Sequence record: MZ443783.1
Length of the DNA stretch: 64,000 nucleotides
Strand: one strand, 5' to 3'
In this document: positions 24,671 through 60,121 of the stretch, piece by piece
How positions within the stretch are numbered: position 1 is the stretch's first letter
Layout: every line of letters begins with the position of its first letter
Notes under the pieces: generated by a model
Seen by the model: only the letters and a program-made list of their open reading frames with translations
Database searches by the model: none
Told to the model about the DNA's origin: nothing
Made by a program: the position numbers and the translations under genes

Positions 24671-24723
24671 GCACATAATAGGATGAAATCGCCATGTACG
24701 CGCCCGTGCGCCCGTGATACAAT
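24671..24723 (+). promoter_or_regulatory. early promoter cassette 1
   Basis: GCACATAATAGGATGAAATCG, 26 nt, then TACAAT with TG extension. Confidence 0.8.
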
Positions 24724-24776
24724 ACACGTAGACGCTACATGTCGTAGCGCATACAACTACTGCCGAGGGGCACACA

Positions 24777-25151
24777 ATGACTGCTATCAAATTTGATTCT
24801 GTTTACGACATTCTTACCGAGATGGACGAATGCGCCAGAGATGTTGACTTCACCAAGACTCTTGGCTTCGACCCAATCAAAGTAGAAATTCTGCAATGCG
24901 GTCTGCAAGAAGATCTCGGCGTGTACGCGTGTTTGCCGAACGCCACAAACATTCTGATTGCCGATTCGACTGACCTGTTCTCTGAGCACCTTAAAGGTGA
25001 CGGCGAAATCACAGTCTGCCGAATCTTAACGCCTAACGGCGAGATGTTCGATGAGCCAGAAGTCGAAGTCAAACAGCTTGGCACGTTCAATGATTTTGAT
25101 TCAGCTTATGCTGCATGGTTAGCGGCGATTAACGAAGAAATCGACAAATAA
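24777..25151 (+). CDS. hypothetical acidic early protein (124 aa)
   Basis: GAGGGG RBS in a hairpin. Confidence 0.8.
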   Translation: MTAIKFDSVYDILTEMDECARDVDFTKTLGFDPIKVEILQCGLQEDLGVYACLPNATNILIADSTDLFSEHLKGDGEITVCRILTPNGEMFDEPEVEVKQLGTFNDFDSAYAAWLAAINEEIDK

Positions 25152-25196
25152 TAGGTCAAAAGCGCTGTAGCAATGCAGCGCTATTTATCGTACTAT
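25144..25196 (+). promoter_or_regulatory. early promoter cassette 2
   Basis: ACAAATAATAGGTCAAAAGCG, 26 nt, TACTAT. Confidence 0.7.
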
Positions 25197-25248
25197 GTAA
25201 TCTCTGGCGCAATGATGCGCACATACAACACTTGCCGAGGGGCACACA

Positions 25249-25950
25249 ATGAAAGCAGCAAACTTTGACGTAGCATTTAACGCGAAAGACGAAGCAACCT
25301 TAAACGCATACGCAGCGAAAATTCTCGAAGCGCTTAACGCTCTGGGGCGTTATGACCTGAAGATCAATATCATCTTCGGCACTGACCCGTTCGGCGAACG
25401 CCCTGATTTTGTGAATGACCCGAACGGTTTTCGCGTTACACAGAACGGCGAAGAAATTTTTGATATCTACACGCCGACAGAAAAACAGATTGAAGGCGAT
25501 GCGTCAGATGCTTTCATCTACGCTTCATGGGCCGACGGCGAAGCGCCGTGGGGTAAAGACGTGTCAGACAATGACATTGCAGAAATCGCCGAACACCTGA
25601 ACGCTGCAATCCCGCGTGTCGGCCGTGTATTCAACGAATCTGATCGTCAGATGCTGCAAAAACTCGCCGACACTTTGAACGCTCGTATGGATCGTACCGA
25701 TGCGCGAGTGATCGTAACGAACGGCGCCGAAGACGATCTCATTGTTATGGTTGTTGGTTACGACGAAGAAGAAGATGAAGTCAGTGATGAATACGGCTTC
25801 TTCTTGAGCCTGCCGTACACCGATGAAGGCGGCACAGACGAGAAATACAGTCTGCACTACGCTGGCTACCCAGGCGTGAACGACCACTCATATAGCTCTG
25901 CTGACCTCGACGAGATCTCAGAAGAAATCGAAGCGCTCGATCTGCTCTAA
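25249..25950 (+). CDS. hypothetical acidic early protein (233 aa)
   Basis: Leader nearly identical to that of 24777. Confidence 0.8.
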   Translation: MKAANFDVAFNAKDEATLNAYAAKILEALNALGRYDLKINIIFGTDPFGERPDFVNDPNGFRVTQNGEEIFDIYTPTEKQIEGDASDAFIYASWADGEAPWGKDVSDNDIAEIAEHLNAAIPRVGRVFNESDRQMLQKLADTLNARMDRTDARVIVTNGAEDDLIVMVVGYDEEEDEVSDEYGFFLSLPYTDEGGTDEKYSLHYAGYPGVNDHSYSSADLDEISEEIEALDLL

Positions 25951-25963
25951 TCACTAACTAACT

Positions 25964-25987
25964 GCGGGGTTACGGCCCCGCTTACTT
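25964..25987 (+). terminator. probable terminator
   Basis: GCGGGG-TTACGG-CCCCGC-TTACTT. Confidence 0.55.
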
Positions 25988-26012
25988 CACAATCTAATTG
26001 AGAGAACATGCC

Positions 26013-26627
26013 ATGAACCTTATCAATACTTTTTTCGTTAAACGCTCTTACGCTTCTCTGGCCGCAGGTAACTTTGCAATCGACGCCAAGCACGTACAAG
26101 AGCTGGTTGAATGTGAGTGTATGATCGTACACGTAGACACAGGCCACCGTAATGCGTTCGCGTTGAAGAACATCTCTATTACGCCTATCGACGAGCACAA
26201 CGTTCGCATTACGTTCGACCCGCTGACCGATGCACACGCGATGCCTGTGACTGTCATGCCGAAAGATCTGAAAGGCAGCATTGAAGTCTACGGCATGTAT
26301 GTAGAAGACCTGAAAGACGTGCCACGTTTCAGCGTGTCGAATGACGCATCAGGCAACAATCCAAATCTGCTGTCGCTTGACCTCGAAAGCCGTCAGCGTT
26401 TCGTTCAATACTTCGGTGGCATGTGTACGCTGACTGACCTGTGCCTGACTCTGCATGAGAAAGGCATTCACGTTGTCGATATCCACAACAACGTTAAGCA
26501 GCACGATCACGGCGTTGGCGTTTTCACTCAGCGCTATCGCACCGCATTCGAACTCAACAAAGACAATGGCATTAAGCGCCACAACGACGACTATCCTGTT
26601 TTGGCTCGCATGACCGTTTTAATGTAA
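26013..26627 (+). CDS. hypothetical protein
   Basis: In-frame ATG 26013 within ORF 25998-26627. Confidence 0.7.
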   Translation: MNLINTFFVKRSYASLAAGNFAIDAKHVQELVECECMIVHVDTGHRNAFALKNISITPIDEHNVRITFDPLTDAHAMPVTVMPKDLKGSIEVYGMYVEDLKDVPRFSVSNDASGNNPNLLSLDLESRQRFVQYFGGMCTLTDLCLTLHEKGIHVVDIHNNVKQHDHGVGVFTQRYRTAFELNKDNGIKRHNDDYPVLARMTVLM

Positions 26628-26636
26628 ACACACCTT

Positions 26637-26659
26637 GCCTCGCATACCGCGGGGCTTTT
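26637..26659 (+). terminator. intrinsic terminator
   Basis: GCCTCGC-ATACC-GCGGGGC-TTTT. Confidence 0.65.
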
Positions 26660-26675
26660 CTATTTGGAGAATGCT

Positions 26676-26936
26676 ATGCACCACTATACGCGTGAAGAAC
26701 TGGAAGAAATGAACTGCATCGAACTGGACCAGCTTGCAAACGAGCGCGGTCTGCTGGAAGATAAAGACGATGACGACGATCTGGACAATGACCTGCTCAT
26801 CGGCATGATTCTTGACGACCAGAACGATACTCGCGTTGCTGACGAGATGGAAGAAGATCGTCAGCAACATTATCGTCGCCTCGATGAAGAACAGCAGGCG
26901 CGTGAGGGCAAAGACGGTTCAGACGACTATTGCTGA
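26676..26936 (+). CDS. very acidic small protein with a Rho-N/HeH-like module (86 aa)
   Basis: ELEEMNCIELDQLANERGL...NDLLIGMILDDQ; GGAG RBS. Confidence 0.75.
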   Translation: MHHYTREELEEMNCIELDQLANERGLLEDKDDDDDLDNDLLIGMILDDQNDTRVADEMEEDRQQHYRRLDEEQQAREGKDGSDDYC

Positions 26937-26993
26937 TTAAGTAAACCAAGAGGCTGCCAGCGCTGGTGGCCTCACTCACAAGAAGGAGCAATA

Positions 26994-27341
26994 ATGAAGC
27001 GCAAAGTAATATTGATAGACACGGCAGAGTTTCACAACCAACCCATCTCGTTTCCATCGATCATTGATTTTGACGGCATAGACACGGTGGTGTTTGTTGT
27101 GAAGTCAAATGGTGAGCACGGAGGCATTGATTATCTTGGTGCGTACTGTGCAACACAAATGACAGTTGGCTATACGAAAGTGCCTATGGCGCAGACGTTG
27201 AATATCGACGAATATGGCGTTGTGCCACTCGAAGATGATATGAAGGCCAAGCTACTTCACACCAACCAGTACGTTGACGAAGTGCCTGAGCAACATCAAA
27301 GCATCTACAGCGCGAAGACTGAAATCCTCTTCGCAGAGTAA
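26994..27341 (+). CDS. hypothetical protein (115 aa)
   Basis: AGGAG RBS. Confidence 0.75.
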   Translation: MKRKVILIDTAEFHNQPISFPSIIDFDGIDTVVFVVKSNGEHGGIDYLGAYCATQMTVGYTKVPMAQTLNIDEYGVVPLEDDMKAKLLHTNQYVDEVPEQHQSIYSAKTEILFAE

Positions 27342-27345
27342 CCAC

Positions 27346-27374
27346 AAGGGCTGCCATTATTGGTGGCCCTTTTT
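27346..27374 (+). terminator. intrinsic terminator
   Basis: AAGGGCTGCCA-TTAT-TGGTGGCCCTT-TTT. Confidence 0.8.
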
Positions 27375-27376
27375 CA

Positions 27377-27387
27377 TTTCTGTAAAT
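27377..27387 (+). promoter_or_regulatory. TTTCTGTAAAT motif
   Basis: Directly after a terminator, about 32 nt before ATG 27419. Confidence 0.5.
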
Positions 27388-27418
27388 ACCTCGTACATTC
27401 ACTGATGCGAGAAACACA

Positions 27419-28996: not shown

Positions 28997-29260
28997 ATGA
29001 ATCTGCCGATTCTACCTCGCTGTGAACTACAAGCATTTGTTCTTGACGGACACACGCAAACTAAAGTGCCTATCAAACTTAATGCCACAAACGTCATCAA
29101 TGTGATGGGCAAAACGTGTGGTAGTCTGCAATGGTTTGATTGTGTGAATCTGCTCATATGGTCATCGTTTGAGCCAGGCAGGTTCACGCTGTATATTGAA
29201 CGTGCTTGCAAAACAGACGAGACTACAGACGACCAGCAATCTGCTGAACTCTGCAAATAA
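28997..29260 (+). CDS. hypothetical protein (87 aa)
   Basis: AAGGA RBS before ATG 28997. Confidence 0.6.
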   Translation: MNLPILPRCELQAFVLDGHTQTKVPIKLNATNVINVMGKTCGSLQWFDCVNLLIWSSFEPGRFTLYIERACKTDETTDDQQSAELCK

Positions 29261-29305
29261 TAGGCTGAAATAGCCATTCAGTCAGATACGCTCCTATGAT
29301 ATACT
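29253..29305 (+). promoter_or_regulatory. early promoter cassette 3
   Basis: GCAAATAATAGGCTGAAATAG, 26 nt, TG-A-TATACT. Confidence 0.85.
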
Positions 29306-29350
29306 ATACGTGAGCGCAGTGCTCATAAAACTAACGCTGAGGAGCGTATC

Positions 29351-29800: not shown

Positions 29801-29802
29801 GC

Positions 29803-33103: not shown

Positions 33104-34164
33104 ATAAGACCGTTGGCCTGATGATTGATGAAGACGTAATGAACTGGCTGGACATGCTGCTTGCGGGTGAACTGAGCAATGTCTTAGGTGCGTTGAACAA
33201 TATCGTGTACGCCCGCCGGCAGGAACTGTCTGTCGAACGTCTGACCGAAGACGAAGATATTGGTGCGCTCTCTCATAAAGAGCTGGAGATCATTCTGCGT
33301 TACGCTGCTCCTAATCATGAGTACGATACGACGGTGCTGTCGAATGAACAACTGCTTCGTCTGGCGATGGATGCACAGGGCATCATCTCCTACACATTGC
33401 CGAGTCATAGTTCGCCTATCATGGTTAAACGTGCTTTCGCTAACGGCAACGTGTGCTCACTGCTTGGCAGTTTTTCGAATCGTGCTGATATCGTCATGGC
33501 TGTACATCACTGGGAATGTGGTCTGTCCAACATCTCGCTCGACGGTGTGACTGGTAACGACGAACGCCCAGACGAACAAGGCATGTACCTGTGCTACGAT
33601 GAGCACAAGCAAGTTCGTTATGGCCGACTGTTCAAGAATGCCAACGACGGCTGGACATTCAGCGAGTATTATTCTGCTGGTGGATCTACTACGTGGCTTG
33701 AAGCGAGTCCAAACAATGCGCTTGATGGTGACGACCTGCCGATCAGCCTGCTGACTAACTGGGTATTCGTTGTTCCAGATCGTTCGCCGTCTATTCTCAA
33801 ACCTGCTGAGGGATTCAAGCGTCTGTCCGACACACAACGCATCTTCCTGTATCTGCGTAGCCTGAGTCCTCACGTTAAAGCTGAGATCGTCGCACACTTC
33901 GACGGCGTTCTGGACAATCGATCATTCACCTCTGTCGATCAGATTGGTCGCCTGACTGAAAAAGACTGGCGCGATGCTGCGATTGCTATCGGTGAAGAAG
34001 AAAGTGGCCAAGAAGGTCCTCACTACTGGGATGATCGTAGTGCGTGGGCTTGCTTCGTCGCTGTGCTCAACTCTCTGTGCTTCGACATGGACACACGCGA
34101 CTTCCAACCGCAGTATGAGTACCAGGCCAACGACGACACTATGGAAGAAGACAACAATGGCTAA
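33100..34164 (+). CDS. hypothetical protein (354 aa)
   Basis: GGAG RBS; long ORF. Confidence 0.8.
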   Translation: MNKTVGLMIDEDVMNWLDMLLAGELSNVLGALNNIVYARRQELSVERLTEDEDIGALSHKELEIILRYAAPNHEYDTTVLSNEQLLRLAMDAQGIISYTLPSHSSPIMVKRAFANGNVCSLLGSFSNRADIVMAVHHWECGLSNISLDGVTGNDERPDEQGMYLCYDEHKQVRYGRLFKNANDGWTFSEYYSAGGSTTWLEASPNNALDGDDLPISLLTNWVFVVPDRSPSILKPAEGFKRLSDTQRIFLYLRSLSPHVKAEIVAHFDGVLDNRSFTSVDQIGRLTEKDWRDAAIAIGEEESGQEGPHYWDDRSAWACFVAVLNSLCFDMDTRDFQPQYEYQANDDTMEEDNNG

Positions 34165-34690
34165 ATCACTCGGCGTATACATGACTTACATTCTGCGTCA
34201 CAAGCCGCAGGATATCGGAATCGCAATGGACACCCAGGGTTGGGTGTCTGTTCTGGACTTCTTGCAGAAAGCAAAGTATGTCAAACAGGTCACTCTCGAA
34301 ATGCTGATTGCAGAAGTTGAGGCGGACGAGAAAGGCCGTTTCGAGTTCAACTCTAACCGCTCCAAGATTCGTTGTGTGCAAGGCCATTCGGTTGAGAACG
34401 TTATTCTGCATCTTGAACCGTTCACTGACCTTGCGCCTTTGTATCACGGTACGGCAGATAAGAACGTGGCATCAATCATGCACGAAGGTATCACGAAGCG
34501 GAAACGCAAACACGTCCACATCAGCCGTGAAATCGAAACAGCCGAGAACGTTGGTCGTCGTCACGGTGCACCTGTTGTGTTTCAGATTGATACACAGGCA
34601 ATGATCACTCACGGCTATAAGTTTTACCGAGCCGAGAATGGAGTCATCCTGACCGATCACGTACCGTCCAGATATATCAAGTTGGTGTGA
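34157..34690 (+). CDS. kptA: RNA 2'-phosphotransferase (Tpt1/KptA family)
   Basis: YILRH, DTQGWV, RFE, IRCVQGHS, LYHGT, RKHVHIS, GRRHG, NGVILTDHVP. Confidence 0.93.
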   Translation: MAKSLGVYMTYILRHKPQDIGIAMDTQGWVSVLDFLQKAKYVKQVTLEMLIAEVEADEKGRFEFNSNRSKIRCVQGHSVENVILHLEPFTDLAPLYHGTADKNVASIMHEGITKRKRKHVHISREIETAENVGRRHGAPVVFQIDTQAMITHGYKFYRAENGVILTDHVPSRYIKLV

Positions 34691-34691
34691 T

Positions 34692-35093
34692 ATGGAAAAG
34701 ACGTACATGACACATTGGGGATCGCGCTACGTGCGGTCCTCCTCCGGCAAGTGGTATTCAGTTCATGGACGTGAAGGTACTTGGGTAACTAACCGCTACG
34801 GTACCTCATTCTATCGTAGCGGTTCAGAGGTATGGCGGGACATAACTCTTGCCGACCGAGAGTCATTAGAACGCGAATTACTCAAACGCACCCGCAATGA
34901 CTTCAAGGAAAATAAGCTCAAGTATAACCACTGGGGCAAAGTGGTGTTGACCATAGCTCGCCAGTCAGAAGATGAAAAGAATGAGCACACGGCAGAACTT
35001 GCTGTGATGCTTGAAGCGCTTAGACAGACTTTCTATGGACAGAAGGTACAGCAACTAAGCACAATTCTGGATGAAATAGCCGTTAAAGACTAA
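34692..35093 (+). CDS. hypothetical protein (133 aa)
   Basis: ORF in operon. Confidence 0.7.
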   Translation: MEKTYMTHWGSRYVRSSSGKWYSVHGREGTWVTNRYGTSFYRSGSEVWRDITLADRESLERELLKRTRNDFKENKLKYNHWGKVVLTIARQSEDEKNEHTAELAVMLEALRQTFYGQKVQQLSTILDEIAVKD

Positions 35094-35111
35094 GCTCGTT
35101 TGTGATATAAT
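35059..35111 (+). promoter_or_regulatory. early promoter cassette 4
   Basis: GCACAATTCTGGATGAAATAG, 26 nt, TG-A-TATAAT; found by predicting its position from the -10. Confidence 0.8.
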
Positions 35112-35154
35112 AGAGATCAACGCTAGACACTCGTTTAGCTACTTACATGAGGAT

Positions 35155-35516: not shown

Positions 35517-37043
35517 ATGAACATGAAAAAGATTAAACACACTTTCCGCCTGACCGATTTGGTACACATCGCAAAACTTCCTGCAGGTATGTCCAAATTC
35601 CACGAAGGCTCGGATGCTATTGTTGTCGGCCGCAACGAAGATAGCGACCAATATATTCTGCACGTTAAAAACGTTGGTGAGCTTTCGTGGTACGAAGGTA
35701 AATCACTGACGTTGATCAGTCACAACAACGGCGAACTGCTTGACCAGTGGGAAGCAGGTGACTACGGTCGTGATAAGAAAAAGAAACGCAAGATCCCAAA
35801 AGAACTGCGTAACTTCACGGCTATCTTGCCTGTGACCTGCAACGCCGATTGTTCGTTCTGCCCTGAGAAAGAAATGGAGCAGAAAGCCAACCAGAAAGAA
35901 TGGCAAGATGGTTTGATTGCAGAGATCAAACGCATGTACAAGAAAACGAAGTTCGACCACGTATCAATCAGCGGCGGCGAACCGACGTTGCGTACAAAGT
36001 TCCTGTTCGAAACGATCGACCGTATTCAGAAAGAAACGCCGATCAAGAAAGTCGGTCTGACTTCTAACGGTCAGTTCCTTGAGAAACCAAACAGTACGTT
36101 CGACTTCTTAGACCGTAACACTACGCCTGAGATGACCAGCAAGCTGTCGCATCTGAATATCAGTATGCACTCGTTCAACCGCGACCTTGCGAACAAGATC
36201 ATGGGCGTGAACTACAAACAGACTCTGGAAGATTTAGTTCGCTTCCGCCGTCAGCTCGGCCGTGACGTTAGCTTCCACATTAACTTCGTGATCAATGACC
36301 AGACTGGTTCGATTACGGAAGAGTTCAAGAGGGCCGCAAACTTCATGCGCGCCAATCCATTTATCGACGTTGTGTTCCGTGTTGATTACAACGACGTTGA
36401 ACTGTCGAAAGCTCTGCGTGACTACGCTATGGAATATGAAGCGTGGCAGGAAGCAAGTCGCATCGCTGTGGCTACTCGCAAGAAGTGCAAAGTGAAAGAG
36501 CCTCGCGCACCTCACATTGTTCAGAAGTTTGATCGCTTCTTCGGCGGCCAGAATCTCGATGACGTTGAAAGCGCTTGGACTACAGGTTGCCCGTCGTGCT
36601 TCACTCATGCGTCGAACGTTGTCAATAACAGTCGCGCATATTTGAAAGCGTCTTCCTACGAACCTAATGAAGACGAAGCGGAGTACACTGAGCTGGTGTA
36701 TCACATGGACGGCGCTCTGTATTGGGACTGGACTCGTAATGACCCTGTACCAGCTCCGCGTAGCAAGCGTTTTGACTTCGAGATGAAAGAAGAAGAAGAC
36801 AAGGCGTGGGAACATGGTTCTGTGGCCGAAGCGATTAACGCCAATCGTTGTTCATTTGGACCTGCTGCACCGCATCACTGCTCTTACGATTCTACTGGCA
36901 CAACGGTCGCACCGAAAGCTGCGAAGAAACCTAAGAAAGTGACACCCGCCAAGAAAACGAAGAAGGTGGGTGGAAAAGTTTCGAGCGTTCCTGGTGCTGC
37001 TCCTGGTGTTTGCGGCTACGGCAATAGTCGTTGTGGTTATTAA
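35517..37043 (+). CDS. radical SAM protein (508 aa) with extra N- and C-terminal regions
   Basis: CNADCSFC (CxxxCxxC), SGGEPT, TSNG, NISMHS. Confidence 0.88.
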   Translation: MNMKKIKHTFRLTDLVHIAKLPAGMSKFHEGSDAIVVGRNEDSDQYILHVKNVGELSWYEGKSLTLISHNNGELLDQWEAGDYGRDKKKKRKIPKELRNFTAILPVTCNADCSFCPEKEMEQKANQKEWQDGLIAEIKRMYKKTKFDHVSISGGEPTLRTKFLFETIDRIQKETPIKKVGLTSNGQFLEKPNSTFDFLDRNTTPEMTSKLSHLNISMHSFNRDLANKIMGVNYKQTLEDLVRFRRQLGRDVSFHINFVINDQTGSITEEFKRAANFMRANPFIDVVFRVDYNDVELSKALRDYAMEYEAWQEASRIAVATRKKCKVKEPRAPHIVQKFDRFFGGQNLDDVESAWTTGCPSCFTHASNVVNNSRAYLKASSYEPNEDEAEYTELVYHMDGALYWDWTRNDPVPAPRSKRFDFEMKEEEDKAWEHGSVAEAINANRCSFGPAAPHHCSYDSTGTTVAPKAAKKPKKVTPAKKTKKVGGKVSSVPGAAPGVCGYGNSRCGY

Positions 37044-38371: not shown

Positions 38372-38635
38372 ATGGCTGTAGGCTTTGTAAAAGATGATGG
38401 CGTTAATGACACCATCGAAGCTAACCTGAATAACGAGATTGATCGCGCCCGTGCTGAACTGCTAGGCAAAGGCACCACACACTGCATCAACCCTGACTGT
38501 GGCGCAGAGATTCCGTTGATGCGCCGTGTCGCTATGCCGAATGCTCGTTACTGTGTGGCCTGTCAATCAAGCCACGATGGTTCGGCTGTTAGCCACTACA
38601 ATCGTCGCGGCTCAAAAGATTCTCAACTGAGGTAG
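38372..38635 (+). CDS. ybiI: DksA/TraR-family C4 zinc-finger protein, YbiI-like
   Basis: CINPDCGAEIP..RR.A.P....CVACQ and C-terminal YNRRGSKDSQLR, matching E. coli YbiI as recalled. Confidence 0.88.
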   Translation: MAVGFVKDDGVNDTIEANLNNEIDRARAELLGKGTTHCINPDCGAEIPLMRRVAMPNARYCVACQSSHDGSAVSHYNRRGSKDSQLR

Positions 38636-42514: not shown

Positions 42515-43495
42515 ATGCGTTTTGGTTTCGCCTGCAAATTGCTTGACGCAAACAACAAACAACCATTCACGAATAAGAGCCTTAGCTATAAACATTTCTC
42601 TGCGCTGTCTGCTACTGACCAACATGCAAAACTTCTGGACGTTGTTACGCACAACCTGACTTCGTTGCTCAACATGATTAAACACGTTGGCCGACTGCGT
42701 ACAGACCTACGTATGTTTCGAATCACCAGTGAGTTGCTTCCACTCTACACTCACCCTAAAGTGTTTCACATGTACATGCGCCATGACGTTGTTACTCTTA
42801 CTGAGTCGCTACTCGCCTTGTGTGGTGAAGCGGCTCGACGCCATGACGTGCGATTATCATTTCACCCAGGTCAGTTCACGGTACTCGCATCTGACCGACC
42901 TGATGTTGTCCAGAACTCAATAGCCGAACTTGAGTACCATGCGTACTGTGCATATCACATGGGATATGGTCGCCGCTTCCAAGACTTCAAAATCAATATT
43001 CACCTTAGCGGTAGACTTGGTGCTTCTGGTTTCAGACAAGCGCATTCGAAACTTTCTGATCGCTGCCGAAACATGTTGACCGTAGAGAACGACGAAATCA
43101 CTTCCAGCCTCGAAGATGTTTTGTGTCTGGCAGACATATGCCCGATTGTCCTCGACATTCATCATCACTGGGTAATGACCAACGAATACATACAACCGAC
43201 CGACGATCGTGTTCAGCGTGTCATTGATTCTTGGCGCGGCGTAAGACCAGTAGCGCATTACTCTGTGTCGAAGCCTGAGTTCGTACCGTCGCGCGGACTC
43301 CCTGATCAGAACAAGCTGTCCGCTAATCGAATGCAGTTACGTGCTCATGCTGATTACTACCACAACGAAGACGTAAACGAGTGGGCCACTAGTTTCACTG
43401 ATTTTGACCTTATGTGTGAGTCAAAAGCGAAAAATAGGGCTAGACTGAAACTGGCGTGTTTTAGCGTCAACTCTGCAAATAATTGGACAAAATGA
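42515..43495 (+). CDS. uvsE: UV damage endonuclease UvsE/UvdE
   Basis: MRFGFAC, HNL, FRITSELLP, RLSFHPGQF.VL.S, INIH, LTVENDE, LDIHHH, H.S, AHAD, MCESKAK. Confidence 0.93.
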   Translation: MRFGFACKLLDANNKQPFTNKSLSYKHFSALSATDQHAKLLDVVTHNLTSLLNMIKHVGRLRTDLRMFRITSELLPLYTHPKVFHMYMRHDVVTLTESLLALCGEAARRHDVRLSFHPGQFTVLASDRPDVVQNSIAELEYHAYCAYHMGYGRRFQDFKINIHLSGRLGASGFRQAHSKLSDRCRNMLTVENDEITSSLEDVLCLADICPIVLDIHHHWVMTNEYIQPTDDRVQRVIDSWRGVRPVAHYSVSKPEFVPSRGLPDQNKLSANRMQLRAHADYYHNEDVNEWATSFTDFDLMCESKAKNRARLKLACFSVNSANNWTK

Positions 43496-43528
43496 GGCTT
43501 GTTTACGAAGGTAGCCCTGTGATACACT
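43475..43528 (+). promoter_or_regulatory. early promoter cassette 5
   Basis: GCAAATAATTGGACAAAATGA, 27 nt, TG-A-TACACT. Confidence 0.8.
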
Positions 43529-43580
43529 AGATATGAGCGTTATCGCTCGTATAACTAGACTGACACAAGGAAATAAGACA

Positions 43581-45715: not shown

Positions 45716-46905
45716 CCGAAGCTGAAATGAACATCGACCACATTCGCAACGCCACGAAATCTATCTTCACTTCTGGCACCGTTCAGCAACGTGACGCTCT
45801 GCGTTCAATCGCTAACACTGTACTTGCACCTAACGCCATGTTTGCGTGTGAAGTCGAGGCGCCTGATGTGGAAACCGCGTATCGTCTGCTGGAAGAAATC
45901 AAATTCACTGGTGACGGCACTAACATGCTTCCTGCCGATGAAGTGTATGCGCTCGATTCCATTCTGAGTAAGAAGTGGAAGAAAGACTTCTTTGAAGCAG
46001 TGCGTAATATCGCGCTGACAATGTACTGCACCGACCCGGCTACTTCGGGTAAAGGCTTTTGGCCACGCAATCAAGGCGAGTTCAATCAGTTGATCACTCG
46101 CGCTTTCGTCTGGGTGTTGGCTCAAGAAGGTCTGAAAAACGTATTGAAAGATCCGACTGTCGTTAGCCATACACGTCTGGCTCAATTTATGATCGCAACG
46201 CAACTCGTAGGCAAAGACGAACCTAATCTGCGCCACTTCACAACGTACCGTCCGTATCAGGACACTGGTGGTGTGAACTGCGACAACATTCTGCCTGAGT
46301 CTTATCTCGAACAAATTCGCGCAGAACGCCGTGCAGGCCAGCCGCCAGAATATGAAGCTGCCAAGAACATGTCGTTCTCTGACCTGGCTGATTTGTGTGA
46401 GCGCTTGAACGTCATTGGTCCGGGTTCGACTAAACCCGTAACCTGTAATTGTGCTGTCGGTGAGCTTTGCGGATGCGAAGAAGACGAATACCAGACGCGT
46501 GATGATTTTGACGAAGACCAGGAGGAGTTGCTGGAAGAGTTCTATCGTAAATTCGGCTTCCCTCACGATGAAGATGAAGACGAGCCCGAAGAAGAAATCT
46601 GGCGTGAAGGTATCTCGCTCATGGAAGTTGAGGTCGACCTGCCTACTGTGCGTCTGACTCTTCCAGAAGCCGGTGTCCGCAAAGACTCACGCATGAAAAA
46701 GCCGATGCAGAAATCTCGCCGTAACAAGATTCTGCTTACGGCTGAACAACAAATCTGGCACAAGGTTGACACTGACCCTGTGTCCGCAGATCGTCGCTTC
46801 GCTATCAGCCTCGTATCTCGTCATACGTGCGGTGTTAGTCGCCCTGTAGCCACGCAGCGTGAAGCACTGGCAATTGCTGCCGCTCTCGCTGAACTCTGCA
46901 AGTAA
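45712..46905 (+). CDS. hypothetical protein (397 aa) with a Cys cluster and an acidic stretch
   Basis: GAGGAAGGA RBS; CNCAVGELCGC. Confidence 0.8.
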   Translation: MTEAEMNIDHIRNATKSIFTSGTVQQRDALRSIANTVLAPNAMFACEVEAPDVETAYRLLEEIKFTGDGTNMLPADEVYALDSILSKKWKKDFFEAVRNIALTMYCTDPATSGKGFWPRNQGEFNQLITRAFVWVLAQEGLKNVLKDPTVVSHTRLAQFMIATQLVGKDEPNLRHFTTYRPYQDTGGVNCDNILPESYLEQIRAERRAGQPPEYEAAKNMSFSDLADLCERLNVIGPGSTKPVTCNCAVGELCGCEEDEYQTRDDFDEDQEELLEEFYRKFGFPHDEDEDEPEEEIWREGISLMEVEVDLPTVRLTLPEAGVRKDSRMKKPMQKSRRNKILLTAEQQIWHKVDTDPVSADRRFAISLVSRHTCGVSRPVATQREALAIAAALAELCK

Positions 46906-46950
46906 CTGGTCAGAATAGCGCTTCTTCGTGGGGCGCTTCTATGATATAAT
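46898..46950 (+). promoter_or_regulatory. early promoter cassette 6
   Basis: GCAAGTAACTGGTCAGAATAG, 26 nt, TG-A-TATAAT. Confidence 0.85.
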
Positions 46951-47016
46951 CATAGATAGAGCAATATCGCTCTCAACGTTTTATCAACCATACGTTTAAA
47001 CACGGGATTGTCATTT

Positions 47017-47319
47017 ATGTCACGCACTATTTCACGCAAGAAAGCCTTAGAGTTAATGTCCAAAACTTATAACGCCAAGCACCCTGAATATCTTCCACGC
47101 CTGATGGCCGAAGATATGGATTCGAAAGACCTATTCGAATTCCGTGAAGATGTTGTCGCCCAGATTCGTGCTGGGAAAGATCCCGTTAAGGTTGTTGATG
47201 ATATGATCGACAACGCAATTCGTGTGACTCTGGTTCGTCGTCGTTCGAGCAATGATTATAATCCGAAGATTGCCGACGTACTGACTGATGAAATTCGTGA
47301 CCTGCTTCGTAACCTGTAA
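47017..47319 (+). CDS. hypothetical protein
   Basis: In-frame ATG 47017 downstream of a promoter. Confidence 0.75.
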   Translation: MSRTISRKKALELMSKTYNAKHPEYLPRLMAEDMDSKDLFEFREDVVAQIRAGKDPVKVVDDMIDNAIRVTLVRRRSSNDYNPKIADVLTDEIRDLLRNL

Positions 47320-51182: not shown

Positions 51183-52124
51183 ATGACTAAAATGATCAAC
51201 ATGCCGTTCGCCACATCTTCAATTCGTAGCTCTTTCTTCTCTGCGAAAGTTCGTGAACTCGATCTCCAGAACGTCTGGAGTCACGTTGTATCAAACAACA
51301 ATCCACAATGGCACGGCGACCCGTTGCTGCACCACATGCACTATCATTCTACCGAGCACATGAAGCAAGTAACTGCTCTCGCTCTGTGGCTGCTGAACGA
51401 AGAAGCTGAACAGCCGTGGCAGTATGACTTGGGTGCGCTGCCGCTGGCTGTCGCGTGTATGTTCCACGATATGCACCATTCTCTCGGCCGCTTGAGCGAT
51501 GCAGTCAACGTGCGTAATGCACAAGACGCTTTCAAACAATATGTGGCTGTATGTGAAGACCAACGCATTATCGACCAGCAGGAAATCATTCTCGAACTGA
51601 TAGGCGTTACGGAATTCCCGTACATGAAGAACCGCCAGCCGAAGAATCTGGTTGAGCGTTGCATTCGTGATGCGGATATTCTTTACGGTATGCAGGACGA
51701 TGCGCTGGACGTTGTGATGTTCGCACTACGTCGTGAGGTGAATCGTGCTGTGAACAAGCCAACACACTTCACGTCAGAACAATGGGCGGCAGGTCGTGTT
51801 GACTTCCTCATGTCTGTGGAGATGTATACGCCTACAGCAAACGCGATCATGGACTGGCTGTTGGCACAAGACAACGATCACAATCATCAGTCTAAGATTG
51901 ATAGCTGGATGCGGGACAACGTTATCTTCCGCGATACGTCAGCACACAAGCTCCAGGCCAATGACGTGTTGTTCATCGACACTGAGGCAGATAGTGCGCC
52001 GAAGCGCCGTTTGATCGAGCGTGTTGAGTCAGTACATCCGTACATCAACTTCTACTTCCATGACGGTGAAGCTATCTCGCTGCGTGACGGCGAGAGCTGT
52101 GTCGTTTGCGAAAGACGCAAATAA
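51183..52124 (+). CDS. HD-domain metal-dependent phosphohydrolase
   Basis: YHSTEH, ACMFHDMHH, CIRDADIL. Confidence 0.85.
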   Translation: MTKMINMPFATSSIRSSFFSAKVRELDLQNVWSHVVSNNNPQWHGDPLLHHMHYHSTEHMKQVTALALWLLNEEAEQPWQYDLGALPLAVACMFHDMHHSLGRLSDAVNVRNAQDAFKQYVAVCEDQRIIDQQEIILELIGVTEFPYMKNRQPKNLVERCIRDADILYGMQDDALDVVMFALRREVNRAVNKPTHFTSEQWAAGRVDFLMSVEMYTPTANAIMDWLLAQDNDHNHQSKIDSWMRDNVIFRDTSAHKLQANDVLFIDTEADSAPKRRLIERVESVHPYINFYFHDGEAISLRDGESCVVCERRK

Positions 52125-52168
52125 TAGGCTGAAATAGACGTATACGAACCACGTGCCTATGATATACT
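52117..52168 (+). promoter_or_regulatory. early promoter cassette 7
   Basis: GCAAATAATAGGCTGAAATAG (identical to cassette 3), 25 nt, TG-A-TATACT. Confidence 0.85.
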
Positions 52169-55954: not shown

Positions 55955-55962
55955 GGTGACCT

Positions 55963-56262: not shown

Positions 56263-56315
56263 GCATAAAACTGGCTAAAATCGTGGTATCAATTTAAGCC
56301 CGACTGTGATATACT
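56263..56315 (+). promoter_or_regulatory. early promoter cassette 8
   Basis: GCATAAAACTGGCTAAAATCG, 26 nt, TG-A-TATACT. Confidence 0.85.
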
Positions 56316-56365
56316 AAAAGCGTAGCGATGCTGCGCTTTTTCACTTATGTCTGAGGAGACAACAA

Positions 56366-56830: not shown

Positions 56831-56831
56831 C

Positions 56832-57515
56832 ATGAAACCTGACTACACTCTGCTTAAACGTAGTAAGACGCACGAAGATGTTTTCGCTTTCGTGTTTGAC
56901 GGCGAGTTGCTTGTTCAATTCAAAGCTGTCCAGTTGCATAAAGCTCTGACCGAAACGCTCAAAGCAAACTGCATCAATGAAGTCGATATCCTGTGGCGTG
57001 ACGGTACGCGTACGGTCCAACAACTGGTTGTGCATCATACGCGTGAGTTCGTACAGTTCGACACTATCGTCCACAACTACAGCGTGTGCCTGATGCTTCG
57101 CGCACAAGGCGTTGGTCATTCGCTTGCTGTGCCTGTCGATGTTCGTTCTATGTATGATGCCGACGGCCTGATGATCAGTGAGATTCGCATTGATAGTGAA
57201 ACAGTCGCTGATCTGATGCGTCACATTAAAACCACGCCATACATTGATCCAGAAGAAGATGACGATGTTGGCGATATGGACGAAGATGATGATTGGGATG
57301 ACGATGATCTCGATCCGACCGAGTTCCACGATATCGAAACAGAATCTATTGCCGATAACAAATTGCAGATTGGCGACTGGGGATATCGCGCCCACGACTG
57401 GGCGATCACTCTGACCGACGAACAGGTAGACCGCATTCACTTCCTCGAAGTCGGCATTGACCCTGACATTGAACTGCCTATTGCAGATGATGCTAAGAAG
57501 GACGCATTCTTCTAA
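56832..57515 (+). CDS. hypothetical protein with an acidic C-terminal half
   Basis: AGGTG RBS before ATG 56832. Confidence 0.78.
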   Translation: MKPDYTLLKRSKTHEDVFAFVFDGELLVQFKAVQLHKALTETLKANCINEVDILWRDGTRTVQQLVVHHTREFVQFDTIVHNYSVCLMLRAQGVGHSLAVPVDVRSMYDADGLMISEIRIDSETVADLMRHIKTTPYIDPEEDDDVGDMDEDDDWDDDDLDPTEFHDIETESIADNKLQIGDWGYRAHDWAITLTDEQVDRIHFLEVGIDPDIELPIADDAKKDAFF

Positions 57516-57706
57516 TGAAAACGATCAACGAACAAGTCAACGAATTGAAACAGCGCGGCGTGCTTATCATCGAAGAACACCAGAAGCATACGCTGCCAGA
57601 TTTGACCTTCACGCTCGACTGTATGTGTCTGCCTCATACGAAGCGTGAAGTAGAGACAACCACGCGCGGCCGCGTTGTTAAAATTCGCCTGACAAACATT
57701 CACTAA
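57515..57706 (+). CDS. hypothetical protein (63 aa)
   Basis: TAATG coupling. Confidence 0.65.
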   Translation: MKTINEQVNELKQRGVLIIEEHQKHTLPDLTFTLDCMCLPHTKREVETTTRGRVVKIRLTNIH

Positions 57707-57719
57707 CTTTTGTGGTCTT

Positions 57720-57794
57720 GGCCCGCCCGTCCAGAAATGCTCACCCCCAATGAGGTGTCTCGCGCAGGGGCATGACGGTCACCGGGTCCTTTTT
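57720..57794 (+). ncRNA. candidate structured RNA or long terminator
   Basis: Nested stems 57720-25/57783-88, 57727-31/57774-78 and 57737-42/57768-73, then TTTTT. Confidence 0.35.
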
Positions 57795-57850
57795 AGAGCG
57801 CACTACAGAGTACGCTGTACAAAGTAAACAACAAAACAGGAGGCTGTTAT

Positions 57851-58195
57851 ATGCGTTTCACCGAAGTATCAAAAGACGCACAGGTTGCGTTAATGTCTAG
57901 CGCACTTGCGGGAGTAATTGAGGCATTCACCCGCGAAGAAGATGATGAAGGCCGCAAGATTCTAGTTCTGGCCCTCAAGCAAGTCGGTCTGACGGTAGAT
58001 GAGTTCAGCGCACTTATCTCTGACTTGTCGCCAGAAGTTGAGCTTGAGATCGTTCGCGTTATGGAAGCTGCTGATGCCGAAGCGGATGAAGAAGACGCAG
58101 ACAGCGAACTCGACACGATGGAAGAGCGCCCAGGCAACCTGAACGATGCGCCGAACATTAATGCAGACGGCTGGGAGAATCTCAAAGATGAGTAG
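57851..58195 (+). CDS. hypothetical acidic protein (114 aa)
   Basis: AGGAGG RBS. Confidence 0.8.
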   Translation: MRFTEVSKDAQVALMSSALAGVIEAFTREEDDEGRKILVLALKQVGLTVDEFSALISDLSPEVELEIVRVMEAADAEADEEDADSELDTMEERPGNLNDAPNINADGWENLKDE

Positions 58196-58391
58196 TCAAG
58201 ATGATGTGAATGGTAGAATTGCTGCGGCCGACGAGCAACGTCAGAAAGAGCGTGAATCACGCTATGATGATTGGTCGATTGACGACCTGCGTGATGCTCT
58301 GCTTGAGAATGGTCTTGTATTTGACGGTGAAGACGTAGACGACTACAGCCGCGCAGACTGTATCAGACTGCTACTGGCTGATGGCTTCTAA
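58188..58391 (+). CDS. small acidic protein with a HeH-like module (67 aa)
   Basis: YDDWSIDDLRDALLENGL...SRADCIRLLL; GGGAG RBS. Confidence 0.7.
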   Translation: MSSQDDVNGRIAAADEQRQKERESRYDDWSIDDLRDALLENGLVFDGEDVDDYSRADCIRLLLADGF

Positions 58392-58444
58392 GCACAAAAC
58401 TGGACAAAATCGTGGTTGTCTCAAATAGCTGCCTGAACTATACT
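58392..58444 (+). promoter_or_regulatory. early promoter cassette 9
   Basis: GCACAAAACTGGACAAAATCG, 26 nt, TATACT. Confidence 0.85.
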
Positions 58445-58450
58445 ATATAG

Positions 58451-58648
58451 ACAGCGAGACAACTATCTCTCTGTATGCCTTTGTTATTGCTTGACCGTGT
58501 GTTTTTCGATTTTCCCGGACGCACGGTCCTTTTTAAAGTGGACTTCGCTGAGGTTCCTTTAAAAAGGGTTCGATACCCTTTGAGCGCGTCGGGCTTTACG
58601 CGGTTTCCGCCTTACGTGCTCTCATGCTAAACCGCAAAGGAAATTGAA
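58451..58648 (+). promoter_or_regulatory. ~200-nt structured 5' leader or attenuator candidate
   Basis: Several hairpins, one followed by T5; alternative pairing near the SD. Confidence 0.4.
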
Positions 58649-59407
58649 ATGCCTACTACTTCACGTCCTAAGACAGAAGACAAGTTTTCCCGTGCTCGCG
58701 CCGCCAAAAACTCACCTGAGCGTCAGGCCGCGGCCACCAAGAAAACGCCACGAGGTCCTTCCTCGGTTCGTCCTAAATCAACGGCAGATCGTGAGCCTAA
58801 GATTCGTGACGAGGAGCGTGTGTACAATCTCGTACATGCAATTCTGAGCGCGTGGAAAGCTGATGTGGGTCATGCCGAACACACGGCAGCCTCTGCTGGT
58901 ATCATCAAAGTGTCTCGCCGTAAGATTGAAGGTGCCTTGCGTGACCTCAAGAATACGCGCTTCACTAAGATCCCGACGCTCATTAATGACGTCCTCGTGT
59001 ATAACGAAGTCTGCAATGAGTTCGGGCAGTGGGTATATGTCGAGCATGACAGTCCTGATTGGATTTTCGTGCGCTTGCCTGAAAACAGCACACCTGTGAT
59101 TCGTGCTGATATCAGCTACGACAAGACAGGCAAAACGTCTGCGTCTGTTTCGACTTCCAGCGAAGTGTTGCTGGAGGACTTTGACGAAGACGAAGAAGAT
59201 GAAATCCCTGAGAACGTCGAATATGACGACGAGGATGATTCTGATGTGAACGAAGAAGAGGACGACGAGGAGGAGTACCAGTCCTGGTCCCTCAGCCAAC
59301 TTCAAAACTTTGCTAAGGCCGAAGGTTACATCTGCATCAAAGATGAAGGTTGGAACGACCGCCAGACGCTTCTTGCTCGCATCCTGAATAAGGGAGCAAT
59401 CAAATGA
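58649..59407 (+). CDS. hypothetical protein (252 aa): basic N-terminus, acidic linker, C-terminal HeH-like module
   Basis: AAGGA RBS, TTG start. Confidence 0.78.
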   Translation: MPTTSRPKTEDKFSRARAAKNSPERQAAATKKTPRGPSSVRPKSTADREPKIRDEERVYNLVHAILSAWKADVGHAEHTAASAGIIKVSRRKIEGALRDLKNTRFTKIPTLINDVLVYNEVCNEFGQWVYVEHDSPDWIFVRLPENSTPVIRADISYDKTGKTSASVSTSSEVLLEDFDEDEEDEIPENVEYDDEDDSDVNEEEDDEEEYQSWSLSQLQNFAKAEGYICIKDEGWNDRQTLLARILNKGAIK

Positions 59408-59853
59408 GTCTGACTATTCGCTCTGCTGCCGAAACTGCTGCAATGATCATTGAAAACGTCACTCTCTACTCTCAAGAGAAGGGGCACGAATATCCGCTGC
59501 CGCGCTTTAAGATGCCCGACAATGCGATACGTCGAATCTCTGGTCATGCTCGCGTTCTGCCTGAAAGCTATATTGAGCAACTGTCTATCGAGCTGCAACA
59601 AATCGACTGGATGATGCTGCGGTATAACGCCGGCGAGTTCTTGTTCATGCACTACGATATCCCAAAGAACTGGACGCGACTGAGTGCGAAGCGTGTGGTC
59701 CCTAATGACGACCCTGCCGCTGAGTACGATACGTGGACGCTTCCTGAACTTCAGGGCTTCGCTCAACGTAACGACTTTTTGCAGCCTGACGAAGAGGGCT
59801 TCAACGATAGAGCGTCACTGATTCGCGCTATCATGCTAGGCGAGACCCATTGA
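59404..59853 (+). CDS. hypothetical protein (149 aa) with a C-terminal HeH-like module
   Basis: C-terminal ~40 aa clearly similar to that of 58649-59407. Confidence 0.8.
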   Translation: MSLTIRSAAETAAMIIENVTLYSQEKGHEYPLPRFKMPDNAIRRISGHARVLPESYIEQLSIELQQIDWMMLRYNAGEFLFMHYDIPKNWTRLSAKRVVPNDDPAAEYDTWTLPELQGFAQRNDFLQPDEEGFNDRASLIRAIMLGETH

Positions 59854-59872
59854 GTAGGGGGAAGATAATCGA

Positions 59873-60019
59873 ATGAACAAATCTAAGCGGGACGCAGAAG
59901 ACCCCGACATTGCTAAAATGCGCAAGCGTCTGGTAGATGCGAAAATCATCAAGCCAGAAGCTGCTGTGAAGCTGTCAAGCAATGACATTGTGAAGCTGTA
60001 CACTTACTACAGCGTATAA
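59873..60019 (+). CDS. small protein (48 aa)
   Basis: MNKSKRDAEDPDIAKMRKRLVDAKIIKPEAAVKLSSNDIVKLYTYYSV; GGGGGA upstream; below the track cutoff. Confidence 0.6.
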   Translation: MNKSKRDAEDPDIAKMRKRLVDAKIIKPEAAVKLSSNDIVKLYTYYSV

Positions 60020-60067
60020 GCAATAATGAGCAGGCAGTGAACGTGCTGCCTGCTATCTGCGAAGTAT

Positions 60068-60121
60068 GCAGAAAACTGGACAAAATCGTGGTTGTTATCT
60101 GAAAGCAACCTATGCTATACT
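60068..60121 (+). promoter_or_regulatory. early promoter cassette 10
   Basis: GCAGAAAACTGGACAAAATCG, 27 nt, TG-C-TATACT. Confidence 0.85.

Follow-up and report, generated by a model that had tools for sequence, protein, structure and literature searches.

The upstream element of Erwinia phage pEa_SNUABM_28 (Alexandravirus; genome of 267,143 bp, ~49% G+C) marks one genuine conserved class of promoters with sigma70-type core elements. These are probably early promoters that are served by the host RNAP and carry an upstream recruiting element. The window analyzed is a stretch of 64,000 nucleotides (genome positions 186,001-250,000), in which the ten promoter sites all lie on the + strand within one 35-kb block of small, mostly unknown (ORFan) genes. 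The initial annotation had reported ten copies of the motif, and all (10/10) were found in place on the + strand. Six matches were exact and ten had ≤3 mismatches, where shuffles expect 0.5. In the whole 267,143-bp genome, 12 sites were detected at ≤3 mismatches, and only the ten of the window are strong copies and precede a -10; we add to the earlier description two degenerate copies that lie beyond the window (genome positions ~258,548 and ~262,622). Each of the ten is followed 25-27 nt later by a TAnnnT hexamer (10/10), usually preceded by TGn (8/10), and the central GG is invariant, as had been described. The sequence AACTCT does stand directly upstream of four copies (24671, 29253, 43475, 46898), and three further copies keep AA at the same two positions.

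The geometry of these promoters differs in two respects from what had been proposed. The comparison of 68 orthologous promoter sites in seven species showed that C-58, A-57, G-49, G-48, A-43, T-35, T-12, A-11 and T-7 never vary, and that T-15 (62/68) and G-14 (60/68) are nearly constant, while the spacer and the upstream coding DNA are diverging (orthologue identity only 0.35-0.7), so that the conserved positions are under purifying selection. The -35 region, said to be unconserved, has a T as the fourth base after the motif, i.e. 3 nt past the element, at all ten sites of the window and all 68 orthologous ones (T-35), and frequently reads TTG or TAG (T-34 in 45/68, G-33 in 30/68). Also, the distance that is fixed is not the one to the -10: the element is fixed relative to the -35, because its offset to T-35 is constant and the -35/-10 spacer varies from 16 to 18 bp. 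Such a spacer is the sigma70 norm. In each cassette, the conserved block (AAsTmw-GCAnAwAAywGGnyrAAAtmG, about -66 to -39) is separated by three G/C-rich bases from a vestigial -35, in which the invariant T often begins a TTG. The spacer of 16-18 bp then leads to an extended -10 (TGnTAyAmT), and a short hairpin follows at the predicted 5' end of the transcript. The block contains A-tracts at -57..-52 and -45..-42, a further AA at -65/-64, and two AAYWGS units spaced exactly 10 bp.

All ten cassettes are on the + strand. Cassette P1 (24665..24754) has its upstream block at 24665-24691 (AACTCT followed by GCACATAATAGGATGAAATCG), -35 TGTACG (24695-24700), a 17-bp spacer, TGa+TACAAT (24718-24723), a predicted start at ~24730 and a 5' hairpin at 24728-24754, and is followed by an ORF from 24777. 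P2 (25138..25223; element 25144-25164, -35 TAGCAA 25168-25173, -10 TACTAT 25191-25196 without TG) combines a terminator-like spacer hairpin (25161-25182; z about -4.9), with compensatory changes in relatives, and a 5' hairpin (25205-25223) ahead of an ORF from 25249; it is absent from pEa_SNUABM_17 and pEa_SNUABM_30. P3 (29247..29326) shows AACTCT plus the element (29253-29273), in which the preceding ORF has its stop codon, -35 TTCAGT, TGa+TATACT (29300-29305), a 5' hairpin (29310-29326) and an ORF from 29351. P4 (35053..35139) has its element at 35059-35079, -35 TTAAAG, TGa+TATAAT (35106-35111), a 5' hairpin (35122-35139) and an ORF from 35155. P5 (43469..43552), whose orthologous promoter was found in Y3, pEa_SNUABM_5 and Yoloswag, comprises AACTCT plus the element (43475-43495), overlapping the end of the UvdE gene, -35 TTGTTT, an 18-bp spacer, TGa+TACACT (43523-43528), a 5' hairpin (43531-43552) and an ORF from 43581.

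P6 (46892..46973) has AACTCT plus the element (46898-46918), a spacer hairpin with a T-rich tail (z about -3.7), TGa+TATAAT (46945-46950), a 5' hairpin (46958-46973) and an ORF from about 47008-47017. P7 (52111..52175), with its element (52117-52137) overlapping the end of a phosphohydrolase gene, -35 TATACG, a 16-bp spacer, TGa+TATACT (52163-52168) and an ORF from 52201, is the only one of the ten that lacks a 5' hairpin. P8 (56257..56345; element 56263-56283, -35 TATCAA, TGa+TATACT 56310-56315, ORF from 56366) carries a hairpin of 9-11 bp plus a T-run (56316-56345) that begins ahead of the predicted start site; it is predicted to act as a terminator for read-through and, truncated in the cassette's own transcript, as a 5' hairpin. 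P9 (58386..58536; element 58392-58412, -35 TTGTCT, 17 bp, TATACT 58439-58444 without TG) has a 5' hairpin (58451-58474) and a conserved second hairpin with a U-run (58493-58536), a candidate small RNA or attenuator, before the next ORF from 58649. P10 (60062..60148; element 60068-60088, -35 TTGTTA, 18 bp, TGc+TATACT 60116-60121) presents a spacer hairpin (z about -2.9) with no evident T-tail and a 5' hairpin (60125-60148), and precedes an ORF from 60185 whose product of 535 aa is conserved in five genera.

Thus, 9/10 cassettes have a 5'-terminal hairpin, and terminator-like hairpins are present too. The mean MFE over the 34 nt past the -10 was -8.97 at the ten window sites versus -4.76 at random TAnnnT hexamers (P about 1e-4). 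The stems are compensated between species; for example, phage Alexandra has a different, fully compensated stem at P4. These hairpins would most likely protect the transcripts against 5'-end-dependent decay. The T-tailed spacer hairpins of P2 and P6 and the T-run hairpin just past the P8 -10 may stop upstream read-through, and because they would terminate transcription arriving from upstream, the units can be read as composite terminator-promoter cassettes resembling PeSLs.

We propose that the ten sites form one early promoter class, at which the host sigma70 RNAP would start transcription of the block of small genes. Canonical -35/-10 promoters showed no excess in the early block or in the whole genome, and no member of the RNAP family was found among the eight large phage proteins scanned. 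Only a sigma70-like factor has been reported for this phage group (PMC7412058), and jumbo phages devoid of an RNAP are transcribed by the host RNAP (PMC13282480). A second, distinct promoter class, AATCTGTAAATA (28 sites), precedes replication genes, structural genes and the gene of the phage sigma factor. The designation as early, made in the initial annotation, fits this context (ORFan block, no other sigma70-type class, distinct second class), from which the timing itself is deduced.

The upstream block may serve as a UP-type recruiting element, in which alpha contacts would make up for the weak -35. As had been noted, it lies in the alpha-CTD/UP window (-59 to -39) and departs from the E. 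coli UP consensus by GG in place of the T-tract. Its A-tracts sit where two alpha-subunit C-terminal domains would dock beside sigma region 4. Over the 14 specified positions of the UP consensus, the phage element scored 7-9, rrnB P1 (reference sequence verified in 5,426 E. coli genomes) 10 and the background 4.4 +/- 1.6. The rrnB P1 UP element (-59 to -38) is positioned alike, just ahead of a -35 that resembles TTGTCA (compare TTGTTA in P10 and TTGTCT in P9), and likewise has A-tracts around -55 and -43; the P10 element starts with CAGAAAA as rrnB P1 does, at an offset of 1 nt. However, rrnB P1 has a T-tract at -52..-46 where the phage element has the invariant GG (-49/-48), besides GC at -59/-58, and the A+T content is 55-68% in the phage element versus 82% in rrnB P1. 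UP elements are rich in A/T and are recognized via the minor groove (PMC2613000), whereas the most invariant positions here are G/C and YWGG stands in place of the distal T-tract. We tentatively regard alpha-CTD as the principal reader of the element, a reading that may well be correct without being the probable one. The initial annotation, which proposed a UP-like element or an activator site, had named the right two alternatives, between which sequence analysis cannot choose.

The other of these, somewhat doubtful and yet a real possibility, is that the promoters are of sigma70 type and that a co-evolving, sequence-specific phage protein is the main ligand of the block, with alpha-CTD at most a helper. 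Such a protein could be an activator made very early or delivered with the DNA, a virion-delivered activator being possible, or a later booster or shut-off regulator. At the G/C positions the 68 sites show no variation, and the block reaches -66, past the UP window. Among the matches listed, bacterial genomes gave no sign of employing the composite element themselves. Four sister genera keep a modified element, in variants that are specific to the genus and do not differ within a genome: Yoloswag and Rivsvirus have TGGTC, and five genomes of the Salmondvirus type have TGTCC. All Salmondvirus promoters, the orthologues of P9 and P10 among them, have TGTCC in place of TGG(A/T)C, although JA29 (TGTCC-type) and AD1 (TGG-type) share the host strain D. 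solani MK10; a reader supplied by the host alone would not predict this change. Also, in Salmondvirus a weak core (TAAACT in most cases, seldom with TGn) stands beside a 27-bp upstream block that is almost invariant, which looks like the profile of an activator-dependent promoter. P2 Ogr (about -55), Mu Mor at Pm (-51 to -33) and MarA/SoxS-type boxes are activator sites just upstream of the -35, likewise asymmetric or bipartite, at a fixed distance from a weak -35 and with known alpha-CTD interplay; the weak core is shared by the Salmondvirus versions. Ogr is a phage activator acting in this position, and so is Mor (PMC4287176). However, the Mor and Ogr sites are dyads, the marbox differs in spacing, and these systems serve middle or late genes through known activator genes, whereas no activator gene was found here. 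Pfam and PHROGs revealed no DNA-binding domain among 59 early-block proteins. To our knowledge, activation of host RNAP by an injected DNA-binding protein has no precedent. Moreover, the Alexandravirus promoters should fire unaided because their extended -10 is near consensus, and the concerted variants could come from cassette replacement by recombination, as proposed for PeSLs (PMC2839356).

The lineage-specific variants on one host strain also make it quite improbable that a host DNA-binding protein, nucleoid-associated or a transcription factor common to Erwinia and Dickeya, activates or bends the promoter. The presence of the element in phages of two host genera would suit such a shared protein, and its phased A-tracts a bending protein, but by eye there is no fit to the IHF, Fis, CRP or marbox consensus, the spacing of the marbox-like GCAC...YAAA being 2 bp off. 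Among the matches listed, the composite pattern gave only scattered single bacterial hits, with no Erwinia or Dickeya. Genus-specific variants could follow a phage factor, and a divergent sigma70-family gene is encoded (window 14343-15392, phrog_17569; HHpred result in PMC7412058). RNAP carrying this factor, or otherwise phage-modified, would make the promoters middle rather than immediate-early. This is improbable: the block stops at -39, which leaves about 27 bp to the -10 and puts it out of reach of sigma region 4, both the -10 and the TGn are of housekeeping sigma type, the sigma gene itself lies behind the second promoter class, and the genome would offer unmodified host RNAP no other plausible entry point. 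Least credible is a block that is mainly a recombination or RNA-processing signal (PeSL-like exchange or an endoribonuclease site) with a secondary link to the promoter. The block is A/U-rich and adjoins hairpins, and the surrounding region is hyperplastic (111 gene clusters, 34 common to all seven phages), the first gene past P1, P3, P4, P5 and P9 being often swapped; yet 68/68 sites keep the block at exactly the same offset from the -35 T, the orientation always matches the promoter, and gene-content breakpoints show no clear concentration at the cassettes.

The cassettes resemble the PeSLs of T4-type phages (Arbiol 2010, PMC2839356; Comeau 2014, PMC4122927), repeated intergenic units of ~100 bp in which an early promoter of sigma70 type has an A-rich region upstream and a stem-loop between the -35 and -10 or adjoining the -10, and which are concentrated in hyperplastic ORFan regions where adjoining gene content varies among relatives. 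PeSLs differ by a consensus or near-consensus -35 (TTGACA, TTTACW or TTGYVH) and by having no sequence-specific upstream block; most stem-loops of the phage cassettes described here, unlike theirs, are at the predicted +1 and without a T-run, and breakpoint enrichment at the cassettes is not demonstrable. T4 early promoters, of the 'UP/-35/TGn/-10' type with an extra unexplained consensus (Hinton 2010, PMC2988021), provide a precedent for the proposed host-RNAP early class; they belong to an unrelated lineage and have a strong GTTTAC-like -35 and an A/T-only upstream region, in contrast to the vestigial -35 and the invariant GCA and GG of Alexandravirus. Nevertheless, in both cases a large lytic phage without its own RNAP would use the host sigma70 holoenzyme for an immediate-early class, with an extended -10, upstream alpha-CTD-type A-tracts and extra conserved positions unexplained by known elements, clustered ahead of small non-essential genes.

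The window is identical to positions 186,001-250,000 (+ strand) of Erwinia phage pEa_SNUABM_28 (MZ443783.1, 267,143 bp, genus Alexandravirus), and the remaining genome of this phage was included for judging the motif against the whole phage. The ten motif copies listed in the initial annotation, from 24671 (promoter P1) to 60068 (P10), are real: GCANAWAAYWGGNYRAAATMG is exact at six of these coordinates and, when up to 3 mismatches are allowed, present at all ten, each time on the + strand; dinucleotide shuffles give a chance expectation of 0.5 matches. Each copy is followed 25-27 nt downstream by a TAnnnT hexamer, and the TG extension described as usual was found at -15/-14 (relative to the predicted start) in eight of the ten sites. 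The complete genome holds 12 sites with at most 3 mismatches. Only ten of them are followed by a -10, the same ten as in the window, and these promoters, hereafter class A, are confined to genome positions 210,671-246,068. A scan with TGnTAYAMT also detected two degenerate class-A copies outside the window, at genome ~258,548 (L005 ~8548 in our sequence set; AACTCT-GCATATTTCTGGACAGAACCT...TGATATAAT) and ~262,622 (L005 ~12622; AACTAA-GCATATTCTAGGACGAAACGC...TGTTACAAT).

Constraint was evaluated on 68 orthologous sites, forming ten orthologous groups in seven Alexandravirus species (the window phage, pEa_SNUABM_35, Alexandra, Dickeya phage AD1, pEa_SNUABM_3, _17 and _30). C-58, A-57, G-49, G-48, A-43, T-35, T-12, A-11 and T-7 are invariant in 68/68 sites, so that the invariance of the central GG (G-49 and G-48), first noticed in the window, extends to all seven species. 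G-59, A-55, A-53, A-44 (64/68), A-42 (66/68), T-41, T-15 (62/68), G-14 (60/68) and A-9 are nearly invariant, and a purine occupies -39 in all 68. The conserved block continues upstream as A-65, A-64 and T-62, in agreement with the AACTCT extension reported previously. On average, orthologues are only 0.5-0.7 identical in the spacer and 0.35-0.7 identical upstream of -66, where much of the sequence belongs to genes. As these flanks diverge while the element positions stay fixed, the element is more constrained than its surroundings.

The core promoter is of sigma70 type. TAnnnT with T-12, A-11 and T-7 was present in 10/10 window sites and in 68/68 orthologous sites, and an extended -10 (TGn at -15/-14) in 8/10 window sites. 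The fourth base 3′ of the motif is T in 68/68 sites, followed by T-34 in 45/68 and G-33 in 30/68, the rest of the -35 hexamer being free; compared with the TTGACA of sigma70 promoters, 17 +/- 1 bp from the -10, T-35 with a frequent TTG looks like a vestigial -35. It lies at a constant offset of 3 nt from the element, and the -35/-10 spacer measures 16, 17 or 18 bp, a length usual for sigma70 promoters. Two earlier statements are therefore only partly right: the -35 does contain one conserved base, T-35, and the fixed distance is that from the element to T-35, not to the -10. Of the ten promoters, the standard -35/-10 scan picked up only P9 and P10.

Most jumbo phages lack an RNA polymerase (RNAP), and little work has addressed how they take over host transcription during the first minutes; according to a 2026 review, RNAP-less jumbo phages rely on host RNAP and phage sigma homologues (PMC13282480). 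The eight large proteins that were scanned gave no RNAP-like family. A divergent sigma factor (phrog_17569) is encoded by the phage, and HHpred evidence for it has been published (PMC7412058). It has a PHROG name and no Pfam, NCBIfam or PDB sequence match, so that its domain make-up rests on that HHpred result. Canonical -35/-10 promoters are not in excess in the early block (16 against 22.6 in shuffles, and 19 against 19.8), and over the whole genome canonical sigma70 matches are about half as frequent as in shuffles (27 against 45-55, ~50), a depletion which suggests selection against accidental host-type promoters. A second motif, class B (AATCTGTAAATA), is over-represented, with 14 exact copies and 28 with the CTGTAAATA core genome-wide. 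Read as (A)ATCTGTAAATA, it is always in the sense of the next gene and often 3′ of a terminator hairpin. Its copies in the window are at 2878-2889 (+), 7417-7428 (-), 14311-14322 (+), 20553-20564 (+) and 27377-27388 (+). Class B is spread all around the genome, where it precedes replication genes, structural genes and the phage sigma gene, in the last case by 20 nt. It is clearly distinct from class A, it resembles the T4 late motif TATAAATA, and it probably corresponds to middle or late promoters; it is undescribed in the literature searched on these phages. The degenerate class-A copy at genome ~262,622 directly adjoins a class-B motif.

Almost all genes behind the ten promoters are without family, the exceptions being a Tpt1-like enzyme, a radical-SAM protein, UvdE, a dUTPase, an SLT transglycosylase and a DksA/TraR zinc-finger protein. 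With no excess of canonical promoters, class B in front of replication and structural genes, no RNAP family in the large proteins scanned and ORFan genes downstream, P1-P10 fit an early, host-sigma70 class, whose timing and start sites we infer. Class A is a defined and testable handle on the early takeover of host transcription by jumbo phages.

Three other promoter types were rejected. In T4 MotA-dependent middle promoters, a MotA box (TGCTT) centred at -30 stands in for the -35; here, -33 to -26 is unconserved (<0.5 bit). A sigma54 promoter carries, at -24/-12 from the start, a GG and a GC that are 10 bp apart, whereas the GG of class A is at -49/-48, with no conserved GC 12 nt downstream and a conserved sigma70 -10 36 nt downstream. 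N4-type promoters depend on a giant virion RNAP that recognizes a conserved hairpin located upstream of the start; class-A hairpins are 3′ of the -10, their sequences vary, and the eight large proteins scanned gave no RNAP family.

That P1-P10 are early promoters of host RNAP with an upstream recruiting element appears to us likely. Within this reading, the RNAP alpha subunit's C-terminal domain (alpha-CTD) is a possible principal reader of the block, at somewhat less than even confidence. As the initial annotation had recognized, the block (-59 to -39, extension to -66) occupies the UP-element window (~-60 to -38) and adjoins the -35. Estrem and co-workers are said to have placed, in 1998/1999, the proximal UP subsite at ~-46 to -38 with the consensus AAAAAARNR, and a proximal A-tract is found here (A-44 64/68, A-43 68/68, A-42 66/68, R-39 68/68). 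The block matches the UP consensus at 7-9 of 14 specified positions, for a background of 4.4 +/- 1.6 and a score of 10 for rrnB P1, whose sequence was confirmed in all 5,426 E. coli genomes and was the sole check on the consensus. A-tracts lie at -57 to -52 and -45 to -42, and the block contains two AAYWGS units 10 bp apart. T4 early promoters, with UP, -35, TGn and -10 plus an extra unexplained consensus, provide a precedent (PMC2988021). UP elements, however, are rich in A/T and are contacted via the minor groove (PMC2613000), and reading by alpha-CTD alone is opposed by G/C as the most invariant bases of the block and by the missing distal T-tract. Where the UP consensus has this tract (-51 to -47, A/T-rich, no specific G/C), class A has G-49/G-48 in 68/68 sites, as initially remarked, together with C-58 in 68/68, and block A+T is 55-68% against 82% in rrnB P1. 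Sites for IHF, Fis, CRP and marbox were rejected on geometry or sequence.

Sister genera bear on the same question. Sasquatchvirus Y3 has the Alexandravirus consensus, Rivsvirus and Yoloswagvirus have GCAAAw-nnn-TGGTCAAAAyAG, and in Salmondvirus, represented by JA29, JA11 and three uncultivated contigs of 111-257 kb, every promoter carries AACTCT-GCAAAT-nnG-TGTCCAAAATAC and the core is weak (TAAACT in most cases, TGn rare). P5, P6, P9 and P10 are positionally orthologous across genera, their downstream proteins being 33-59% identical, and the Salmondvirus form, TGTCC in place of TGG(A/T)C, is found at orthologous P9 and P10. The 27-34-bp element is more strongly selected than neighbouring genes and persists where downstream proteins are ~34% identical. 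Such uniformity within genomes combined with differences between genomes is not predicted by a reader supplied by the host only; it is predicted by a co-evolving phage protein, but also by cassettes replacing one another through recombination. No DNA-binding domain was detected among 59 early-block proteins (Pfam, PHROGs). A phage-encoded reader of the block seems to us somewhat less probable than alpha-CTD. In that tentative model, the -66 to -39 block would be the docking site of a phage protein, possibly delivered with the DNA, which would recruit host sigma70 RNAP and co-evolve with its site in five or more genera of RNAP-less jumbo phages (TGG(A/T)C versus TGTCC); this would be a new route to the capture of host transcription at the start of infection. 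Recognition by alpha-CTD alone would extend the range of sequences known for UP elements. The rest of the probability is shared by a host factor, the phage's sigma and a role in RNA or recombination. JA29 (TGTCC) and AD1 (TGG type) were isolated on the same host strain, and such lineage variants offer a clean swap contrast between direct alpha-CTD recognition and a phage factor.

The strict composite pattern was found in IMG/VR only on 261-268-kb contigs of this phage group, and the cross-genus core gave multiple matches only on 110-270-kb relatives. Bacterial genomes gave at least 120 scattered single matches to the composite core, consistent with chance; among the matches listed there was no sign that bacterial genomes use the element, and the real ones were only phage contigs mis-binned in a MAG. 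These are three contigs of 46-48% G+C in the actinobacterial MAG 'Raoultibacter sp. CGS1Y3-bin67' (JAVWLC010000385/023/226), with Alexandravirus-type promoters at L051:1561-1613, L055:740-792 and L063:4196-4248, and are mis-binned jumbo-phage DNA. The promoters are undescribed in the papers found that mention these phages. Among known systems they come closest to early promoters of phages that have UP-like elements and cassettes of PeSL type, and they do not constitute a new kind of system. Their consensus lets annotators mark early operons in ~50 Erwinia and Dickeya biocontrol phages, and the cassettes offer strong promoters of small size that bring their own 5′ hairpins and terminators.

The likeness to the PeSL cassettes of T4-type phages, whose anatomy is published, includes the hairpins (PMC2839356, PMC4122927). 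In the window, the 34 nt after the -10 of the ten sites have a mean MFE of -8.97 kcal/mol, compared with -4.76 for stretches that follow random TAnnnT hexamers (P ~1e-4); over all 68 sites the mean is -8.46, compared with -3.34 in shuffles. A 5′ hairpin begins within a few bases of the predicted start in 9/10 groups; stems are retained or compensated between species while loops drift, as for the P4 stem GCTAGAC/GTTTAGC, which becomes GCTGTACA/TGTACAGC in phage Alexandra. Conserved spacer hairpins were found at P2, P6 and P10 (z -2.9 to -4.9), with T-rich tails and compensatory changes at P2 and P6. The P8 hairpin (9-11 bp and a T-run) begins upstream of the predicted start, and should thus stop read-through but be cut short in the transcript of P8 itself. 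Most 5′ hairpins have no T-run, which leaves P2, P6 and P8 as the only likely terminators. Class A shares with PeSL a repeated, conserved intergenic unit with a sigma70-type early promoter and an A-rich upstream region (PMC2839356), a stem-loop in or beside the promoter as potential terminator or attenuator, and a preference for hyperplastic ORFan regions, all ten sites lying at genome 210.6-246.1 kb. In this early block, 34 of 111 gene clusters are common to all seven phages and most proteins are without family. PeSL cassettes are also associated with indels and exchanges, with breakpoints at the cassettes and mini-circles; here the first gene varies after P1, P3, P4, P5 and P9, but so do many other junctions, and breakpoints are not clearly concentrated at the cassettes, the whole block being plastic.

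Comparison of window 24671-25950 with relatives (L008, L009, L010) revealed a 233-aa gene located behind P2 in pEa_SNUABM_28 and _35, and behind P1 in Alexandra, AD1, pEa_SNUABM_3, _17 and _30. The P1 and P2 leaders of pEa_SNUABM_28 are nearly the same (catacaac..gccgaggggcacacaATG). This arrangement looks like a cassette-flanked insertion of the 124-aa gene. The P9 leader (58451-58648, ~200 nt, no conserved ORF) stands alone between P9 and P10 in pEa_SNUABM_30. Its hairpin with U-run (58493-58536; z -3.8, 12 bp, three of the pairs compensated) makes it a candidate for a small RNA of ~85 nt or for an attenuator. The leader has no Rfam match, and Rfam and tRNA scans of the window gave none.

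Among the early genes, 38372-38635 (+) encodes a DksA/TraR-family C4 zinc-finger protein (Pfam PF01258, 4.9e-12), also annotated in the Alexandravirus AD1 and in each of the four phages of sister genera that were examined, which may be an RNAP secondary-channel effector redirecting the host polymerase. Interspersed with the early ORFans are a Tpt1/KptA RNA 2′-phosphotransferase (33974-34690), a radical-SAM protein (35517-37043) and a UvdE UV-damage endonuclease (42515-43495). Together with an RNA ligase, these suggest an RNA-repair counter-defence module; the ligase is annotated at ~13.5 kb in the near-identical relative pEa_SNUABM_16.
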